Of a stretch of 64,000 bases of DNA, positions 7,181 to 64,000 are shown piece after piece. The notes under the pieces were generated by a model. That model was not told the origin of the DNA. It worked only from the letters and a program-made list of their open reading frames with translations, and searched no databases. The DNA is from Podarcis liolepis. Its lineage: Eukaryota. How positions within the stretch are numbered: position 1 is the stretch's first letter; the number at the start of each line of letters is the position of its first letter. The position numbers were made by a program, and so were the translations under genes. Location of the stretch: NCBI GenBank assembly GCA_965112155.1, contig OZ218105.1; one strand, 5' to 3'.

Positions 7181-7969
7181 CCGTATTTTTCGCCCCATAA
7201 GACGCACTTTTTCCCCTCCAAAAATGAAGGGGAAATCGGGGTGCGTCTTATGGGGCGAATGCCTGCAAGCCTCGCGCGCCCGGCAGGAGGTCCCACCGGG
7301 TGCGCGAGGCTTGGGGCGGCAGCCTGTCGCCCGAAGCACGGGGAGCCCTCGGGAGGGCTCCCCCTGCTTCGGGTGAGTGTCTGCAAGCCTCGCGCACCCG
7401 GCAGGAGGTCCCACCGGGTGCGCGAGGCTTGGGGCGGCAGCGGACTGCTTGTGCGCACCTAGAAGCTTGGGGCGCGCTGAGCTCAGCACGCCCCAAGCTC
7501 CTGGTATAGCGCAGCGATCCGCTAGCCCTGGGAGAGCCCCGCGGCTCTCCCAAGGCTAGCGGACTGCTTGCGCGCACCTAGAAGCTTGGGGCGCGCTGAG
7601 CTCAGCACACTCCAAGCTCCTGGTGTAGCGCAGCGATCCGCTAGCCCTGGGAGAGCCCCGCGGCTCTCCCAGGGCTAGCGGACTGCTTGCCGGCACGCAG
7701 AAGCTTGGGGCGCGCTGACCTCAGCTTGCCCCAAGCTTCTGGATTAGCGCAGGGGTCCTCTAGCCCTGGGAGAGGCGCCCAGCTCTCCCACGCTAGCGGA
7801 GACCTTGCCGGCACGCAGAAGTTTGGGGCGCGCTGAGCTCCGCACGCCCCAAGCTCCTGGTGTAGCGCAGCGCACCTGGGGGGGAAATAAATTTTTTTCC
7901 CTTTATTTCCCCCCCCAAAATCTAGGTGCGTCTTATGGGCCGGTGCGTCTTATGGGGCGAAAAATACGG
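7181..7969. mobile_element. Tc1/mariner-pogo type MITE with internal GC-rich tandem repeats
   Basis: TIR CCGTATTTTTCGCCCCATAAGACGCAC at both ends, TA flanks; internal units of about 120 bp. Confidence 0.9.
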
Positions 7970-13036: not shown

Positions 13037-13367
13037 AATATTTTATTCAACAGTAAGCTCCACTATATTCCGTGGATTTTACTCTGAAATACAGTACAAG
13101 TTGTAAAGGGGCTTCTTATCAGTAAAGAGATGCCCATGTTGAAGCAGATATGAACAGCTAAAATAGCAAGGCTGAATAGCAAGGCCAGACAACATGCAGC
13201 TGACACAATGCTGGCAGAAGAGAAAACACAGAACTCAAAATAGAGGCTTGGAATTATTACAAAGCTAGAGCAGACTGTAAAATAATCAAGTAAACCCAAG
13301 CCAAGGCACCAAAGAGAAAAACCCACAAGGTCGGACCTAAAGAAACCCCCCTCACAAGCCCTCTAAC

Positions 13368-13531
13368 CATAGCTGTCAGCCTTCCCTTTCTTTGCGGGAA
13401 ATTCCCTTATTCCAGTGCCGTTTCCCGCTGCTTCCTGCTGCTATCCCAGATTGTTAGATATCCCGTAGACTGTCCCCGGGACAGGTGAGGCTGCTGATCC
13501 CTTATTTTCAAACTGAATGTTGACAGCTATG
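13368..13531. mobile_element. hAT MITE related to 8835-9355
   Basis: CATAGCTGTCA/TGACAGCTATG TIR; TSD CCTCTAAC/CCTCAAAC. Confidence 0.85.
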
Positions 13532-13794
13532 CCTCAAACGGCCATGCCTTTTACATGAAGGAAACTCTCCGCAAAGTAATTTTATTTGTACTCAAGCTAA
13601 TTGCATACTTTCCAGTCTCCAGTTACTGTAACACTTGGCTTCTTTAAAACAAGCGAGCATATACCATTACGAATACTGATTTGCAGTTAAGCAGTTAATC
13701 TGTAGAGTGAGATTTTATGCTGGTTCTATTTAGGACTAGCATGACTGACTTAGGTTCATGAATTTAAGTGGGTCTACTCTGAGTAGGTCTAGCA

Positions 13795-14179
13795 TGTGCA
13801 ATTTGATTTATCTGCCGCGGTCCCCGCTAATTGATTTGCGACTCCAATTAGCGATTTATGGCCGCCCGGCACACTTCCTCTTGTGCAGCTCTCAGTTACG
13901 TCTCAGCAGAGTTTCGCACAGCGGTGTAAACTGTCACGTAGTTTTGGCTTCCAGACAAACACACACAGAGTCCAGGTTTGTCTATTTACAGCTTTTATTC
14001 CAACATTTCTCAGGAATTTCCAGGACTATTTGCAGCCATGACAAAACTGCATCCTTTCCCCACGAAGCACAGAGTGGGACTGGCTAGCTCTTCCCAAACT
14101 CCTCCCAGGTTCGAAAACTGACGTCAGAATGGTGTGGCATCATGGGAAGAACTTAACTCGTTAAGTTCCAGCCTCAACA
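13795..14179 (-). repeat. 3' LTR of Copia element
   Basis: Direct repeat of 17169-17553; contains TGACGTCA and a minus-strand AATAAA. Confidence 0.95.
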
Positions 14180-16934
14180 CCCCCCCTTGCTGCACCTTCT
14201 GACAAGACCCTTTTGAGTTCAACACCTTCCCCTTTGCCTTGTGCTTCTTCCCGGCATCTTTCCCAGGCACCTGTTGAACCCTTTCAACATTCCCAGAATC
14301 ACACTGTGCGAATTTTGCCCACGCACTTGTCGCTTGGTACCTTTCAGGTGGAATGCCCTTTGTTGTGCGACTAGACCTTCTGGGCATAAACTCAGATGTT
14401 ACCTCTGACTCACTGCCACCAGGAACTGTGTCCTCAGCATCACGGGATTCCCCCTCTGACTTAAAGCGTTTTCGAATCCTCTCCATTACACTCACAGGAG
14501 AACTAGGCTCACTCTTGGCCTCTCTTTTCACAACCTGTGGAGAAACTACAGATACCTCCTCCTGTTCCTCCTGTTCCTGACTTTGGTCAGTTACCTGATC
14601 ATCATCATCAGACTCAGCTTCTTCTTCCTCCCCCTCAGAATCTTCCTGTTCTGAGTCAGAGAGACACTCTGAGAGAACATCACGCTTGACAGCAGTCTTT
14701 GACTTTTTATCCTGCTCATAGAACTCAGCGTACTTGCTGATCAGTAACTTACTCTGATCACCTGATGGAAACGCAAACCTCCATGCACTCGCTGTTGGCT
14801 CATACCCACAGAAAATCATTTTCCGGAACTTGGATCCATCTGGCCCCTGCAAAGCAGCAGGTACTGACACAGATGCATGTGATCCGAACATACGCAAAAA
14901 ATGAATCTGGGGTTTCCTGCCATGCAACAACCTAAACGGTGTGTCACCTACCATTGAATTGTAGGTCCGATTCCAGGTGAAGCTTACATACTTGATTGCC
15001 TCCAGCCAAAACCTTGGAGGTAACCCAGAATCTTTCAGCAACACCTGTGCAGTTTTAACCAGAGCCTGACACTTCAGCCCTGCCACCCCCCACTGATTGG
15101 GTGAAGTCACTGTGTGACGTATCCCTTTCTTGCGAAAGAACTTCTGCAAAGCAGAACCTGTAAACTCAGCTCCTCTGTCACTTGTGACAGCTTGTACTTT
15201 GGTGGAAAACCTTATTTCTACCTCCTCAATCCAATGTTTGATCAGCTGTGCTGCATCATCCTTGGATTTGAGACCGTGTGTCCAGGAATTCTGTGTAAAA
15301 TCTTCCTGCATCGTAAGCAGATACCTTGACCCTCCCAGACTTGGTTCCTTCACAGGACCCCACAAATCTATGTGAATTTGTTCAAAAGGTTTTGTTGTTA
15401 TCCTCTCTACTTTCGGATAACTGCATCCTTTTACCTTTGCCAGTTTGCAAGTTTCACAACTTACAGCATGTCCACATTCTGAGATCTTACAACCTTTGGA
15501 AACTTCAGGTAGCACCTGTAGTTGTTCCAAACAACCATGAGCTGTTCGTGTATGCCAAGTATGGACACATGAATCATGATTGGGAATTGTAGCACGCAGT
15601 GCTTGTGCTTTCTCAACCTTCCCATCACCCTCCAGAGGCGTTTTAAGAATGAAGAGATCATTCTGCCCCTTTTTAACCTTGGCAAGCATCCTCCCTCCTT
15701 TGGAGATTGTGCACACATCATCCTGAAAACAAACCGTAAATCCCATTTTCAGTAAATAAGGCACAGATAAAAGACAGTGGTGCATCCCAGGAACAGTACA
15801 ACACTCCAACGTTTCCTGTAAAATAGGCATAAAGAGATTTGTAACGTTAGTCACATATTTTTTCTGTCCATTTGCAAACAGTACAGTCTTCCCAACCGGA
15901 ATTGCCTTGCAATTCCACCTCTCAACAGCAGGTGTCTCTGGAATCAAATTGCAGTTAGCTGCAGAGTCAATAACAAAATTTAGCTCTGTGCTTGTGTCAC
16001 AGCTGTCTTCAGACAAAGCCAGACTAGCTGTTATCTGATACGTCTCCTCACGTTGTTTTCCACGTCCTTCTCTTGCGTTCCCACGCTGGCCTCCTCTCCC
16101 AGACTGGTTCCCATGGAAACCCGACTGATTTCCATGATAGGTGTCCTTGAAGCCTTCCTGTCCAGCTGCCCTCACTTTCTGTGGGCAGTCTCTTTTGAGA
16201 TGACTGTGGGATCCACACACGTAGCACCGACGAGTGGAAAAAGCCTGAACAAAGCTCTCATCTGGCCTGGCCCCCCCCTTTTTCCCGGTGGAGCTCCCTG
16301 CGCCAGACTTGCTCTCCCTGAGGCGCCTCTCCTGTTCGTCAGCCAAGCGTCCTGTGACGTACGCCAGAGTCAGATCCTGCGGATTCATAGACTCCAAAGT
16401 TAGACATAAATTGTCATAGCTTTTGTCCAGAGAGCTTAGCAAAATATAAACCTTCAACTCATCTGTAAAGTTCACCTGCAACAGCCGCAGTTCATTAAAC
16501 ACAGAGAGCATCTCTGTAACATGCTGTCTTATGTCCCCACCTGGACGCAGCTTCATCTCAAACAAACGCCTGGTGGTGTGGATTTTAGCACCAGCTGTGG
16601 TCCTGTGGTGCACTCTTTCAAGAGCAGCATAAGCGTCATGCGCAGTGTCCAAACCCTCCACATGGGGCAACTCTGAACCCTCCAAACTGAGCACTATAGC
16701 TCCCAGGGCTTTCTGGTTTCTCCTCTGCGAAGCATGCGCATCTGCAATTGCTGCAGCTGCAGCTCCGGCGGCTGGTTGAGGCAGTGGAGGCCTTAAGACC
16801 GCGTCCCACAGACCCTTAGCTACCAGCCAGGCCTTCAGCTTTCTGCTCCATTCCGCCCAATTTTGGCCGTTTAACTTTTCGAAAGGCACGGAGAATGAAT
16901 CATGGCCGTCCGCTATCTCCTTCCGTTCTCCCAA
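14124..16934 (-). CDS. Copia Gag-protease-integrase polyprotein, 936 aa, truncated before RT
   Basis: KLNGQNWAEW Copia-Gag N-terminus, zinc knuckle CYVCGSHSHLKRDC, protease-like FVIDSAA, HHCC (WHTRTAH/CETC), IHIDLWGP, SDRGAEF, MIFCGY, RRSSRTTKG linker; reads through the PPT into the 3' LTR. Confidence 0.9.
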   Translation of the reverse strand: MGERKEIADGHDSFSVPFEKLNGQNWAEWSRKLKAWLVAKGLWDAVLRPPLPQPAAGAAAAAIADAHASQRRNQKALGAIVLSLEGSELPHVEGLDTAHDAYAALERVHHRTTAGAKIHTTRRLFEMKLRPGGDIRQHVTEMLSVFNELRLLQVNFTDELKVYILLSSLDKSYDNLCLTLESMNPQDLTLAYVTGRLADEQERRLRESKSGAGSSTGKKGGARPDESFVQAFSTRRCYVCGSHSHLKRDCPQKVRAAGQEGFKDTYHGNQSGFHGNQSGRGGQRGNAREGRGKQREETYQITASLALSEDSCDTSTELNFVIDSAANCNLIPETPAVERWNCKAIPVGKTVLFANGQKKYVTNVTNLFMPILQETLECCTVPGMHHCLLSVPYLLKMGFTVCFQDDVCTISKGGRMLAKVKKGQNDLFILKTPLEGDGKVEKAQALRATIPNHDSCVHTWHTRTAHGCLEQLQVLPEVSKGCKISECGHAVSCETCKLAKVKGCSYPKVERITTKPFEQIHIDLWGPVKEPSLGGSRYLLTMQEDFTQNSWTHGLKSKDDAAQLIKHWIEEVEIRFSTKVQAVTSDRGAEFTGSALQKFFRKKGIRHTVTSPNQWGVAGLKCQALVKTAQVLLKDSGLPPRFWLEAIKYVSFTWNRTYNSMVGDTPFRLLHGRKPQIHFLRMFGSHASVSVPAALQGPDGSKFRKMIFCGYEPTASAWRFAFPSGDQSKLLISKYAEFYEQDKKSKTAVKRDVLSECLSDSEQEDSEGEEEEAESDDDDQVTDQSQEQEEQEEVSVVSPQVVKREAKSEPSSPVSVMERIRKRFKSEGESRDAEDTVPGGSESEVTSEFMPRRSSRTTKGIPPERYQATSAWAKFAQCDSGNVERVQQVPGKDAGKKHKAKGKVLNSKGSCQKVQQGGVLRLELNELSSSHDATPF

Positions 16935-17168
16935 GGGGGCCCCAAGCTGTACTTACAAAAACACCAGCTCCTCTGGCTTCTCTCCCTGGAGAAACGATAC
17001 CTTGCTGCTCTCAGCTCTCAGCAACACAGGCAAATCTCTGCGTTTTTCAGCTTGCTTGCTTGCTTGCTTCCGCCTCCTACCGTGCCTCCTGCTCGAAACC
17101 GCAGATCAAAGCTCCGGCAGTATCTCCCGTGACAGTTTTACGATCGATGATTTAGGTTACCCATAACC

Positions 17169-17553
17169 TGTGCAATTTGATTTATCTGCCGCGGTCCCCG
17201 CTAATTGATTTGCGACTCCAATTAGCGATTTATGGCCGCCCGGCACACTTCCTCTTGCGCAGCTCTCAGTTACGTCTCAGCAGAGTTTCGCACAGCGGTG
17301 TAAACTGTCACGTAGTTTTGGCTTCCAGACAAACACACACAGAGTCCAGGTTTGTCTATTTACAGCTTTTATTCCAACATTTCTCAGGAATTTCCAGGAC
17401 TATTTGCAGCCATGACAAAACTGCATCCTTTCCCCACGAAGCACAGAGTGGGACTGGCTAGCTCTTCCCAAACTCCTCCCAGGTTCGAAAACTGACGTCA
17501 GAATGGTGTGGCATCATGGGAAGAACTTAACTCGTTAAGTTCCAGCCTCAACA
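17169..17553 (-). repeat. 5' LTR of Copia element
   Basis: Direct repeat of 13795-14179; only one substitution noticed by eye. Confidence 0.95.
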
Positions 17554-18181
17554 TAGCATTGGATATAACCTATTCCAGTGTCTTTCATATTATGTTTACC
17601 ATACACTTAGCTGGCAGGTTTCTTATTCTATAAAAGGAACAATAAATACAATTTTTACACAATGACTATGTAAAGGAAAGCACACATCCTTATTTCTTGC
17701 CTGGCCTGACAAGGTTGTATGCATTCTTTGGGGGACTTGGAAGTGGTCAACGGCCATGCCTTGGGCATGTGTGTCCGTCAAGGAGGTTTACAATGGCACT
17801 AATCCCACTCCATGTGGATCCATGTGCACTATATCACGGCTGCGTGATGCAGATATCAAAACTTCACTCCAGTGTGGCCTAGGCCCTCATCTCCAAATCC
17901 CCTTGTACAGTAAGATCCTCCCCATTGTTAAGAAAACTCATATTTAAGGCTATGGAACACAGGAGCCAACTCTTAGGGGCCAAGGTCCTTTTGCCCCCCC
18001 CAATAAAAGATTTGAGGGGGCTGCCCCCTCCCCAAGTTGATGGGTATTGCCATTCAAATGGTGTGTGTGTGCAATATCATGTGATCAATTACCTGTCCCC
18101 ACATGTTTTATTCAAGTTGGCCCCTCTTCTATGGAGCCTCCATTCCTTAATTCTCTCTTCCACTTGTTTTGGGCGCCAAAG

Positions 18182-27064: not shown

Positions 27065-27450
27065 CAGTGTTGTGCTTCCTTTAAGGGAGCGGGAGCTGCA
27101 AGAGTCCAGTTGGAGGTTGACCTTTGTAAGGTGAGCAGGCTGGACTTGGGAGATTTCAGCAGATTTTGAGCTGAGCTCCGCTTGCTTTGGATATGCACAC
27201 AGGCTTTCGAATGGGGTCAGTCACGTTTTTAACGACCCCCTTCAAATGCTTGTGACATTCCTGGTTGTCGTTTTTATAATGATAAGAATACTTACAAGTC
27301 TCATACATGCCCAGTTTGGGGGGGGGGGTGTCTACCAGTTACCTAGCAGGAAACAAGGTCTCATTATCTCCCCAAGTCAGAAGAGTGGTACTATTGGTCC
27401 TTGACCAACCACAATATAATATATAAATACCAGCTTTCATTGGAAGGTTG

Positions 27451-27851
27451 TGTGAAAGATTTTACAGCTTCCTTAAGCACTTTGTTGAACTGCTTCTGTG
27501 ATTCCTTAACATGTAAACAAAAATCCTTCCTTACATGTTCAATGGATAAAGTGGATTATTATGTCCCCACTTTCCTGTTTGTTCTGTGAAAGATTTTACA
27601 GCTTCCTTAAGCACTTTGTTGAACTGCTTCTGTGATTCCTTAACAGGTAAACAAAAATCCTTCCTTACATGTTCAATGGATAAAGTGGATTATTATGTCC
27701 CCACTTTCCTGTTTGTTCTGTGAAAGATTTTACAGCTTCCTTAAGCACTTTGTTGAACTGCTTCTGTGATTCCTTAACAGGTAAACAAAAATCCTTCCTT
27801 ACATGTTCAATGGATAAAGTGGATTATTATGTCCCCACTTTCCTGTTTGTT
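27451..27851. repeat. Tandem repeat, 3 x 134 bp
   Basis: Units start at 27451, 27585 and 27719 with TGTGAAAGATTTTACAGC. Confidence 0.95.
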
Positions 27852-38872: not shown

Positions 38873-39072
38873 NNNNNNNNNNNNNNNNNNNNNNNNNNNN
38901 NNNNNNNNNNNNNNNNNNNNNNNNNNNNNNNNNNNNNNNNNNNNNNNNNNNNNNNNNNNNNNNNNNNNNNNNNNNNNNNNNNNNNNNNNNNNNNNNNNNN
39001 NNNNNNNNNNNNNNNNNNNNNNNNNNNNNNNNNNNNNNNNNNNNNNNNNNNNNNNNNNNNNNNNNNNNNNNN
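38873..39072. other. Assembly gap, 200 N
   Basis: Run of exactly 200 N; left contig ends inside a hAT-MITE-like sequence. Confidence 0.99.
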
Positions 39073-55853: not shown

Positions 55854-56142
55854 TAATTTATTATTTATACCCCACCCATCTGGCTGAGTTTCCCCAGCTC
55901 CCAATCGAGTGTTAAAAACAATACAGCATAAAATATTTAAAACTTCCCTAAACAGGGCTGCCTTCAGGTATCTTTTAAAGAGAAGATAGCTGCATATTTC
56001 CTTCACATCTGAAGGGAGGGTGTTCCACAGGGTGGGCGCCACCACCGAGAAGGCCCTCTGCCTGGTTCCCTGTAACCTCACTTCTCCCAATGAGGGAACC
56101 GCCAGAAGGCCCTCGGCGCTGGATCTCAGTGTCCGGGCTGAA
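55854..56142 (-). mobile_element. L2-type LINE 3' fragment
   Basis: Reverse complement of 60619-60963. Confidence 0.8.
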
Positions 56143-56848
56143 TCCCTCGGCCAGCCCCTGCCAGCAGTACTGAGCTAGCAGACCACAGGCCTGGCATGGT
56201 GGAAGGCAGCTTCCTACGAGCGCACCGCCCCGTGTCCGGACTGCAGCCCGACCCACCTCCTCCCCACCCGCGCTGGAGGCGCAGCCCGAGAAGCGCCTCC
56301 CGGGGCTTCCTGAGGCAGAGGCCCCGCAGCCCTCGTTTCGGCTTCGGGAGGGCCGAGAAAAAAGGCGCCTGACGGGGGGTGGGGTGGGGTGTGAAGCAGG
56401 CACCGCATGAAGGAGCCGGACGGCGCGCAGGAAGCGGGCTGGCCGCGTCCACACGGGCGGGCAGGCGCAGGTAAGCGGCCCTCTCCCCTCCCCGGAAGCG
56501 GTGCTGTCGCGCGACGCCCGTCCACAAGCGAAGCGGAACCGACTCGCTCCCTGGGAGCCGTCAGCCCGGACTCCGGAGGCCTTTTTCTGCTCCGCGCCTT
56601 GGCCTCAGAGGGGGGGGGGTTCAGTTGGGTAAAAGTCGCGCGCATTCCCTCCCCCCCCTCAAAATATGCGGGCGCCTCACACAAACAGCGCTTCTCTGAG
56701 GGGAAAAGAGGCGGGGGGGGGAGGGGACGGGAAGCGCTTCTTCTCCGGCGGGGCTGTGGGGAGGCTTCCCTTCCCTCCCCCCCCCCAGGCCAAGCCCGGA
56801 GAGAAGGTCTCCCCTCGCCCCCCACCCCCGGCACCGCGCGAGCCTCAC

Positions 56849-56908
56849 CTTCTCCCGGCTCCCCTTCTCCTCCTCCCGCGGCAGCGGCTCCTTCGCGGCC
56901 ACAGACAT
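56849..56908 (-). CDS. SNX5: SNX5 first coding exon
   Basis: ATG in CpG island; MSVAAKEPLPREEEKGSREK then AAG|GTGAGG donor, phase 0 matching exon 2. Confidence 0.75.
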
Positions 56909-57260
56909 GACAGCGCCTTGCCTCTTCGGCCCTCACTGCGCAGCCGCGGAGGCTCCCCCGCGCGCCGCCTTTTCTGCCGCTCGGGAGGAGGAGGAGGCGG
57001 CCCCGCCCCGCCCTAGAGATAAGAAAAGGGTAGACGAGCCCCGTTTGCCCCTGCCAGCGCATCTTCTCCCTAAGCCGCCTTGAGTCCCGTGTCCGGGGAT
57101 GGGGAGGAAAGGTGGGCAGCGCCGGCCGCCCAGGAGGAGAGCTGAGGCGACCGCCTTTCGGCGGCAGGACCCACGGGGCAGCAGGTCGCGATGTAAGCCT
57201 GGACAACACGCAACACAAGACACCCCTCTATGGCCCAAGGGTTGCATTAACCCTTGCTTA

Positions 57261-57678
57261 AGGTCCGTAAAGCTATGGTTTTCCCAGTAGTGATGTATGG
57301 AAGAAGGCTGATCGCCGAAGAATTGAGGCTTTTGAATTATGGTGCTGGAGGAGACTCTTGAGAGTCCCATGGACTGCAAGAAGATCAAACCTCTCCATTC
57401 TGAAGGAAATCAGCCCTGAGTGCTCACTGGAAGGACAGATCCTGAAGCTGAGGCTCCAATACTTTGGCCACCTCATGAGAAGAGAAGACTCCCTGGAAAA
57501 GATGGGGAAAGATGGAGGGCACAAGGAGAAGGAGACGACAGAGGACGAGATGTTGGACAGTGTTGTCGAAGCTACAAACATGAGTCTGACCAAACTGCGG
57601 GAGGCAGTGGAAGACAGGAGTGCCTGGCGTGCTCTGGTCCAGGGGGTCACGAAGAGGTGGACACGACTAAACAACAAC
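57261..57678 (+). mobile_element. RTE/BovB-like LINE 3' fragment
   Basis: AAAGCTATGGTTTTCCCAGTAGT..RVPWTARRSN..LKLRLQYFGHLMRREDSLEK..GGACACGACTAAACAACAAC. Confidence 0.9.
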
Positions 57679-60618: not shown

Positions 60619-60963
60619 TTGGTGAAGGAGCGTCTCCACCCCCATCGTTCAGCCCAGACACTGAGATCCAGCGCCAAGGGCCTTCTGGCGGTTCCCTCAT
60701 TGCAAGAAGTAAGGTTACAGGGAACCAGGCAGAGGGCCTTCTCGGTAGTGGCACCTGCCCTGTGGAACGCCCTCCCAGCAGATGTCAAAGCAATAAACAA
60801 CTATTTTACTTTTAAAAGAGAACTGAAGGCAGCCCTCTTTAGGGAAGTTTTTAATGTCTGATGCTGTACTGTTTTTAATATTCAGTTGGAAGCCGCCCAG
60901 AGTGGCTGGGGAAACCCAGCCAGATGGGCGGGGTATAAATAATAAATTATTATTATTATTATT
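60619..60963 (+). mobile_element. L2-type LINE 3' fragment
   Basis: RAFSVVAPALWNALP..FKRELK peptide; GGAAGCCGCCCAGAG..(TAT)n tail. Confidence 0.82.
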
Positions 60964-61220: not shown

Positions 61221-61546
61221 CAGTGGTGCCCCGCAAGACGAATGCCTTGCAAGACGGAAAACTCGCTAGACGAAAGAGTTTTCTGTTTTGGAGGTGCTTC
61301 GCAAAACGAATCTCCTGTGGGCTTGCTAAGCAAGACGAAAATGTCTTGCGAGTTCCTGCGGGGTTTTTCCCCTCCCCCCCTATTTCTAAGCCGCTTATCA
61401 GCTGATCCGATAAGCTGAAAAGCGGCTAAAAGCCGCTAATAGCACTAATCCGCTAATCCGTCAATGGGCTTGCTTCGCAAGGCGAAAAAACCGCTAGACG
61501 AAGAGAATCACAGAACGGATTCTTTTCGACTTGCGAGGCACCACTG
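61221..61546. mobile_element. Tigger/pogo-like MITE
   Basis: TA|CAGTGGTGCC(C/T)CGCAAG TIRs. Confidence 0.88.
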
Positions 61547-61745
61547 TATACAGTAGATGACTATGAACAAGTTACTGTTCAGTCAAAGCAGTTCATACAG
61601 TGATCTGCAAGTCATCAAGTTCTGAGTAATCAGGTTATGAAATAAAGTAATGTTCAATTTATGTGTGAAATGGTCCGCAGCATTAACCTTGCAAAGCCAA
61701 AGTTTGATTAAGTACTCAGTATAATTATTTTTTCTTGTTTTGCAG

Positions 61746-63507: not shown

Positions 63508-63685
63508 GTCAGTAAAGTGGGCATGACAATTCAAATAATTTTTTGCACTTGCTGCCTCTTATTTCCACATGCTCATTCTGGAGGTGAATCTGTTTTATCC
63601 TATGACATTCCAGAAAAATAAGGACAGTGAAGGGTGGGGCAGGGAAAAAGGTGTTCCTATACCCTGGGTGAGCTGGGACAAAGTA

Positions 63686-64000
63686 CAGTGGTGCCTCGCA
63701 AGACGAAAAGAATCCGTTCTGTGATTCTCTTCGTCTAGCGGTTTTTTTGTCTTGCGAAGCAAGCCCATTAGCGGATTAGCGCTATTAGTGCTAATAACGG
63801 CTTTTAGCGGCTTATCTGCTGATCGGATCAGCTGATAAGCGGCTTAGCGGCTTAGCAAAAGGGGGGGGGGGAGAAAAAAAAACCTGCAGGAACTCGCAAG
63901 GCATTGTCGTCTTGCGAAGCAAGCCCATAGGAAATTCGTTTTGCGAAGCACCTCCAAAACGGAAAACTCTTTCGTCTAGCGAGTTTTCCGTCTTGCGAGG
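63686..64000. mobile_element. Tigger/pogo-like MITE, inverted twin of 61221-61546 (runs off the window)
   Basis: Reverse-complement match along its whole length. Confidence 0.88.

Follow-up and report, generated by a model that had tools for sequence, protein, structure and literature searches.

A Ty1/Copia retrotransposon that lacks reverse transcriptase (RT) and RNase H occupies positions 13795-17553, on the minus strand, of a 64,000-nucleotide stretch of the lizard Podarcis liolepis (assembly GCA_965112155.1, contig OZ218105.1), referred to here as the window. We consider it likely that this 3759-bp element is a recent insertion of a non-autonomous, RT/RNase H-less Ty1/Copia lineage of lacertid (Podarcis-type) lizards. 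By this account, an internal deletion would have taken everything from just before the RVT_2 domain of RT to just before the polypurine tract, and would have spared the long terminal repeats (LTRs), the primer-binding site (PBS), the leader and the purine tract itself. Transcripts of the deleted form could then have gone through packaging, reverse transcription and integration with Gag, RT/RNase H and integrase that RT-bearing Copia elements of the same genome would provide in trans. The deleted form would also have persisted long enough to reach several species and to accumulate several percent divergence. The copy studied here would be a decaying passenger in that lineage, with its start codon gone, its protease motif altered and its catalytic integrase glutamate replaced. 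The most plausible reading of this open frame is descent from ancestors that were recently under constraint, which does not prove that the copy is translated into protein. A first-pass annotation, made from the sequence without database searches, had proposed a partner-dependent element whose frame is still maintained by selection, and its individual claims are taken up below where results bear on them.

The assignment to Ty1/Copia follows from LTRs with TG...CA ends inside a 5-bp target-site duplication, a Gag of the Copia type and an integrase that lies ahead of the RT position (coordinates in Table 1). The two 385-bp LTRs differ at a single position (13884 T versus 17258 C), which is a CpG/TpG site, and the flanking TAGCA duplication is perfect, just as the first-pass annotation had described them. 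It had also reported a PBS and a polypurine tract, and candidates for both are present. Read on the sense strand, the 5' LTR terminates in ...GCACA, and immediately after it comes the 9-nt sequence GGTTATGGG, which may be complementary to the anticodon-arm region of initiator tRNA-Met, consistent with a primer of the half-tRNA type. Half-tRNA priming has been reported for Drosophila copia (PMC5371799), and a profile of the Pseudoviridae has been published (PMC8515867). Rfam and ARAGORN searches returned no match in or near the element and no tRNA in the 64-kb window.

Between these signals runs an open frame of 936 codons that encodes Gag, a zinc knuckle, protease, integrase, an acidic linker and an N-terminal remnant of RT. 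It then reads through the purine tract and meets its stop at 14124, inside the 3' LTR. Pfam detects DUF4219, Retrotran_gag_2 (E = 5e-31), zf-CCHC, gag_pre-integrs (weakly), rve (E = 6e-12) and SH3_retrovirus in this frame. When full-length Copia polyproteins from lizards were compared with the window by tblastn, the element was the only match in 64 kb, aligning to residues 1-883 of 1381 in protein P0175 and to residues 4-902 of 1385 in protein P0160. Beyond the linker motif RRSSRTTKG the frame is degenerate, but it can be aligned gap-free with the approximately 50 residues ahead of RVT_2 in P0175, P0160 and a further relative, P0003, and stays colinear with them. Around codon 910 (14205) the homology stops, with the purine tract no more than about 13 nt away; the deletion has thus brought the first ~60 residues past the integrase-RT linker close up against that tract. 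The first-pass annotation had recognised this short degenerate stretch, the passage of the frame through the purine tract and the stop within the 3' LTR, and each of these details agrees with the alignments.

Neither RVT_2 nor RNase H was found in the Pfam search or by tblastn across the 64-kb window, in agreement with the earlier report that both are missing. Colinearity with the lizard Copia proteins of 1381-1385 amino acids puts the absent RT/RNase H stretch at about 480-500 codons. An element without these two domains is a deleted derivative of Ty1/Copia and not an autonomous member of the group. Because RT and RNase H are absent, copying would have been possible only with borrowed enzymes, and this absence together with the young age of the insertion supports the earlier proposal that another element's enzymes were used.

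The proposal of recent copying likewise withstood examination, since the LTRs carry only one mismatch and an allele that lacks the insertion is present in a read set. In run X1, one contig joins position 13795 to position 17566, as expected of an empty site, and carries a single TAGCA. The depth of this contig is 46.6, compared with 93 for the adjoining flank contig. Between the X1 flank contig and the window, 4 of 438 sites are different, and X1 therefore derives from another individual or haplotype. A conspecific or close relative thus has at least one allele that does not carry the insertion. The single mismatch in 385 bp corresponds to an age of approximately 0.5-1.6 million years, an estimate with a very wide interval that uses assumed rates of 0.8-2.4e-9 per site per year. 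The X1 empty-site contig also has five extra letters, TACAG, relative to the filled allele, located seven bases to the right of TAGCA (window positions 17559-17566). It amounts to a short indel associated with the haplotype that carries the insertion.

Evidence that the RT-less form is a lineage and not a single accident comes from sequences outside this locus. In run X11, which derives from the organism coded H and is a transcriptome only as a guess from its size, a 153-nt contig aligns to 14129-14281 with no gaps and 11 mismatches (about 93% identity), and thereby spans LTR, purine tract, deletion junction and RT remnant. The stretches 14283-14484, 14475-16269 and 16269-16729 are covered by other contigs of X11. 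In addition, a RefSeq protein of Podarcis muralis (XP_077785850.1, here P0005; 315 amino acids) is 68% identical to the frame over residues 632-910 and shares the degenerate remnant; about 30 unrelated residues follow before the protein terminates, and it contains no RT. The junction in organism H and the P. muralis protein that ends after the remnant make a lineage the supported reading and a one-off deletion unlikely. The first-pass annotation had named the possibility that only this copy lacks RT as the case against its proposal, and both sequences speak against that possibility. Between 14% and 47% of the element's 31-mers are present in 20 runs from 11 studies and nine coded organisms. 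Searches for homologous proteins with the whole frame and with the integrase region returned no close relatives, the frame was not present among exact-sequence clusters, and a search for related loci in JGI metagenomes and IMG/VR yielded nothing related.

In the 5' leader (16958-17114), 155 nt are missing from one contig of X11. The ends of the skipped segment are not GT..AG on the sense strand, and the gap resembles a deletion present in organism H more than a splicing event.

Some points weigh against the preferred reading of a dispersed RT-less lineage mobilised in trans. The closest RT-bearing proteins found are only about 40% identical to the frame. P0005 is a gene model without DNA context, and its end would lie within an LTR. 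Abundance, by contrast, favours that reading: summed over the element, contig depth exceeds that of the single-copy flank (93 in X1) by a factor of about 100-900 in X1 and about 40-470 in X3. This is a rough measure and not a copy number; the depth bins do not separate RT-less from RT-bearing copies, and Logan contigs stop at graph branches. The raw reads of run X23 (74) are too thin to calibrate copy number.

The state of the frame in this copy bears on whether it can be translated. The first-pass annotation had described an uninterrupted, intact frame of 936 amino acids. Its freedom from stops is real, but as listed by the ORF finder it opens at TTG, and it has ATA (isoleucine) where every relative has its initiator methionine, so the frame is not intact. 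The relatives' N-termini all have the form 'MA..(E)SF.VPF', including Gag fragments of Podarcis lilfordi (77-82% identity), P0003, P0160 and P0175, and tblastn places residue 1 of P0175 exactly on the ATA codon at 16916-16914. An in-frame stop lies 13 codons upstream of this codon, and the first in-frame ATG is codon 127, within the Gag domain. The sole nearby ATG, at 16903, is in another frame and reaches a stop after 10 codons. This ATG was considered as an old start separated by a frameshift and was rejected, as the relatives' N-termini put the methionine at 16916-16914. Because there is no canonical start codon, synthesis of full Gag by canonical translation from this copy appears unlikely, and the Copia copy at this locus, which is young and non-autonomous, is probably non-coding.

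The enzyme motifs have also degenerated, as the first-pass annotation had noted. The protease triplet reads D-S-A, compared with D-S-G in relatives, and Pol_BBD, which Pfam detects in relatives, was not detected in this frame. At the place of the catalytic glutamate of integrase, next to a three-residue gap, the codon specifies glycine. Most related copies in the read sets have glutamate at this codon, owing to a different middle base, which accounts for 69% of depth in X1, for 89% in X3 and for the entire depth in X11. The glycine is therefore a defect of this copy or of a minor sub-lineage, and not a family trait. Of 59 alignment columns at which 11 autonomous Copia proteins show no variation, the frame deviates at 13 (22%), whereas each of those 11 proteins deviates at 0-10% when it is left out in turn.

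Variants within 13795-17553 are asymmetric between the strands. Sites at which this copy has A and other copies have G on the sense strand occur at 35 per 1000 reference bases, and the other three transition classes occur at 16-22 per 1000. Possible explanations are that cDNA in the ancestry of this copy underwent G-to-A editing or that a polymerase was biased. At the start position, the change to ATA falls in the same A-for-G class.

An alternative, which we regard as possible but doubtful, is that the RT-less lineage is kept protein-coding by selection, such that its own Gag or Gag-PR-IN (Gag-protease-integrase) protein packages its RNA in cis or interferes with its partner. Several observations favour it. 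The ratio of Gag identity with three autonomous relatives to the mutual identity of those relatives is 1.05, compared with 0.74-0.80 for protease and integrase, and the CCHC knuckle is intact. In simulations, a frame of 936 codons stays free of stops in only about 3% of cases at 3.5% neutral substitution and in about 0.1% at 7%. Variants in the frame are synonymous in 17 of 31 cases, compared with 9.0 expected from the same change types, which gives a rough dN/dS of about 0.34. This value is not near 1, the result that the first-pass annotation had said would count against its proposal, but the 31 variants are the best-supported subset of about 250, all are in integrase and the C-terminal part with none in Gag, and the comparison set comprises all family copies at >=90% identity to this copy and may include autonomous ones. 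There is also a precedent in the mouse intracisternal A-particle (IAP) element I-delta-1, whose fusion protein acts in cis (PMC6466679). Set against these observations, the present copy has no initiator methionine and no in-frame ATG before codon 127, although its transposition is recent. It may therefore have had no need to translate Gag itself, unless the change at the start codon arose during or after the last round of copying. Furthermore, both the synonymous excess and the domain-wise conservation could be inherited from autonomous ancestors. These sequence comparisons agree with past constraint on Gag and a relaxation in the enzymes, but they only suggest selection within the RT-less lineage itself. 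The first-pass proposal of selection on Gag or particle function accordingly keeps the conservation by domain and the synonymous excess on its side, and has the missing start codon of this copy against it. The fuller version, in which an RT-less Copia lineage persists across wall-lizard species because selection keeps Gag functional while protease and integrase decay, remains tentative in our judgement. If it were true, the element would be a vertebrate Copia counterpart of IAP I-delta-1 or of the plant TR-GAG elements, either packaging itself in cis or competing with an autonomous partner.

Two further alternatives would deny that a dispersed RT-less form exists. Internal deletions are common during reverse transcription, and an autonomous Copia element might have lost RT/RNase H by template switching in its last round of copying, or by a later genomic deletion. 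We find such a one-off event improbable, because contigs from a different organism share this junction at about 7% divergence, because the 68%-identical P. muralis protein has the same remnant before it ends, and because protease and integrase have diverged beyond what a fresh deletion allows. The other alternative is an assembly artefact, in which repeat collapse or a mis-join produced a falsely short element. In favour of such an error, the family is highly repeated. However, the complete LTRs are enclosed by a perfect 5-bp duplication, an independent read set includes the corresponding empty site with only one TAGCA, the junction is spanned by independent contigs, and the sole run of N in the window (38873-39072) is distant from the element. 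An artefact is therefore scarcely credible. Our preferred reading remains a recent insertion from a trans-mobilised RT-less lineage.

Table 1. Features of the RT-less Copia element, in window coordinates.
Feature	Position	Strand	Basis or remark
Target-site duplication TAGCA, left copy	13790..13794	.	Perfect 5-bp duplication
3' LTR	13795..14179	-	385 bp; 1 mismatch relative to 5' LTR
936-codon open frame	14124..16934	-	Gag, zinc knuckle, protease, integrase, acidic linker, RT N-terminal remnant
Purine-rich tract	14180..14200	-	Adjoins 3' LTR; core AAGGGGGGG at 14188-14180
Deletion junction	14192..14204	-	Homology to RT-bearing relatives ends; purine tract adjoins
Integrase-RT linker RRSSRTTKG and degenerate RT N-terminal remnant	14205..14384	-	Colinear with P0175, P0160, P0003
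Integrase C-terminal SH3-like domain	14706..14924	-	Pfam
Place of integrase catalytic Glu, reads Gly	15078..15080	-	Alignment; next to 3-residue gap
Integrase zinc finger and core	15096..15590	-	HH..CC and both Asp kept
Protease triplet D-S-A (D-S-G in relatives)	15960..15968	-	Alignment
CCHC zinc knuckle	16185..16226	-	C-X2-C-X4-H-X4-C intact
Gag (DUF4219 and Retrotran_gag_2)	16311..16874	-	Pfam
ATA (Ile) at place of initiator Met of all relatives	16914..16916	-	Relatives' N-termini; tblastn
PBS-like 9-nt GGTTATGGG	17160..17168	-	Adjoins 5' LTR on sense strand
5' LTR	17169..17553	-	385 bp, TG...CA ends
5' LTR motifs			CRE-like TGACGTCA at LTR position 54; AATAAA at 181
Target-site duplication TAGCA, right copy	17554..17558	.	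Perfect 5-bp duplication

Elsewhere in the window, the segment just left of the element (13300-13617) is a very high-copy repeat, with a summed depth about 4000 times that of the single-copy flank in X1, and is probably a SINE-like (short interspersed nuclear element-like) sequence. Within it, many reads at 13473-13512 show a short joint that goes back on itself, which suggests a variable internal tandem unit. Tandem arrays are present at 7439-7913 (four copies of a unit of about 119 nt) and at 27447-27851 (three copies of a unit of about 134 nt, 99% identity). Inverted repeats pair 55897-56142 with 60648-60893 (246-nt arms, 86% identity, 4.5 kb apart) and 61245-61548 with 63684-64000 (98-136-nt arms, 90-95% identity, about 2.1-2.5 kb apart), and a GC-rich stretch lies near 55900-57400. 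Further mobile elements, or a CpG island, may account for these inverted repeats and the GC-rich stretch.

The element probably belongs to a known kind, the internally deleted LTR retrotransposon that is mobilised in trans, as typified by IAP I-delta-1 and ETn. It counts as an ordinary dependent element, and a protein-coding role is not proven for it. Among the metazoan groups surveyed, squamates have the largest numbers of Copia elements, and all of those assigned belong to the Mtanga clade (PMC11889832). The autonomous squamate proteins P0160 and P0175 (1381-1385 amino acids) share their domain order and N-terminus with the element, but they possess RT/RNase H and are only about 38-42% identical to the frame, and hence represent other families. 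Placement in the Mtanga clade rests on RT/RNase H (PMC11889832), both of which are absent from the element, and surveys based on these domains are blind to RT-less derivatives. Our literature search found no described squamate Copia element of the RT-less, trans-mobilised kind, which is weak evidence of absence.

Several classes of non-autonomous elements offer partial parallels. The plant TR-GAG elements resemble the lizard element in being shorter than 4 kb, in having LTRs, a PBS and a purine tract, and in encoding a Gag frame without RT (PMC4350172). However, TR-GAG elements by definition encode Gag alone, whereas the lizard element retains rve, SH3_retrovirus and a protease-like region and resides in an animal host. 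The likeness to TR-GAG proposed by the first-pass annotation thus extends to the short length, the Gag frame and the lack of RT, but not to the retained protease and integrase. Barley BARE-2 is also a non-autonomous Copia element; it parasitises the autonomous BARE-1 and produces no Gag of its own (PMC4350172). Unlike the lizard element, BARE-2 keeps RT/RNase H, such that a form with untranslated Gag and a retained pol does not describe an element that has lost both its methionine codon and RT/RNase H. Furthermore, the loss of the methionine codon is established for this copy and not for the family as a whole. The LARD and TRIM classes, which have no coding capacity, do not accommodate a frame of 936 codons with Copia domains.

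By analogy, the closest working counterpart is the I-delta-1 form of the mouse IAP. It too has an internal deletion, one long frame and all of its cis signals, and it is non-autonomous, requires proteins in trans and forms an active lineage that yields new polymorphic insertions and accounts for a large proportion of the new ones (PMC6466679). The two differ in that IAP I-delta-1 is a betaretrovirus-like endogenous retrovirus whose deletion affects part of gag together with pol, and not RT/RNase H alone. Moreover, a role in cis has been reported for the fusion protein of IAP I-delta-1, whereas the lizard copy has no start codon. A dependent lizard lineage that is still inserting and polymorphic would be a useful marker. 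In addition, it would provide a natural system in which to ask whether translation of a non-autonomous element's own Gag helps that element to spread.

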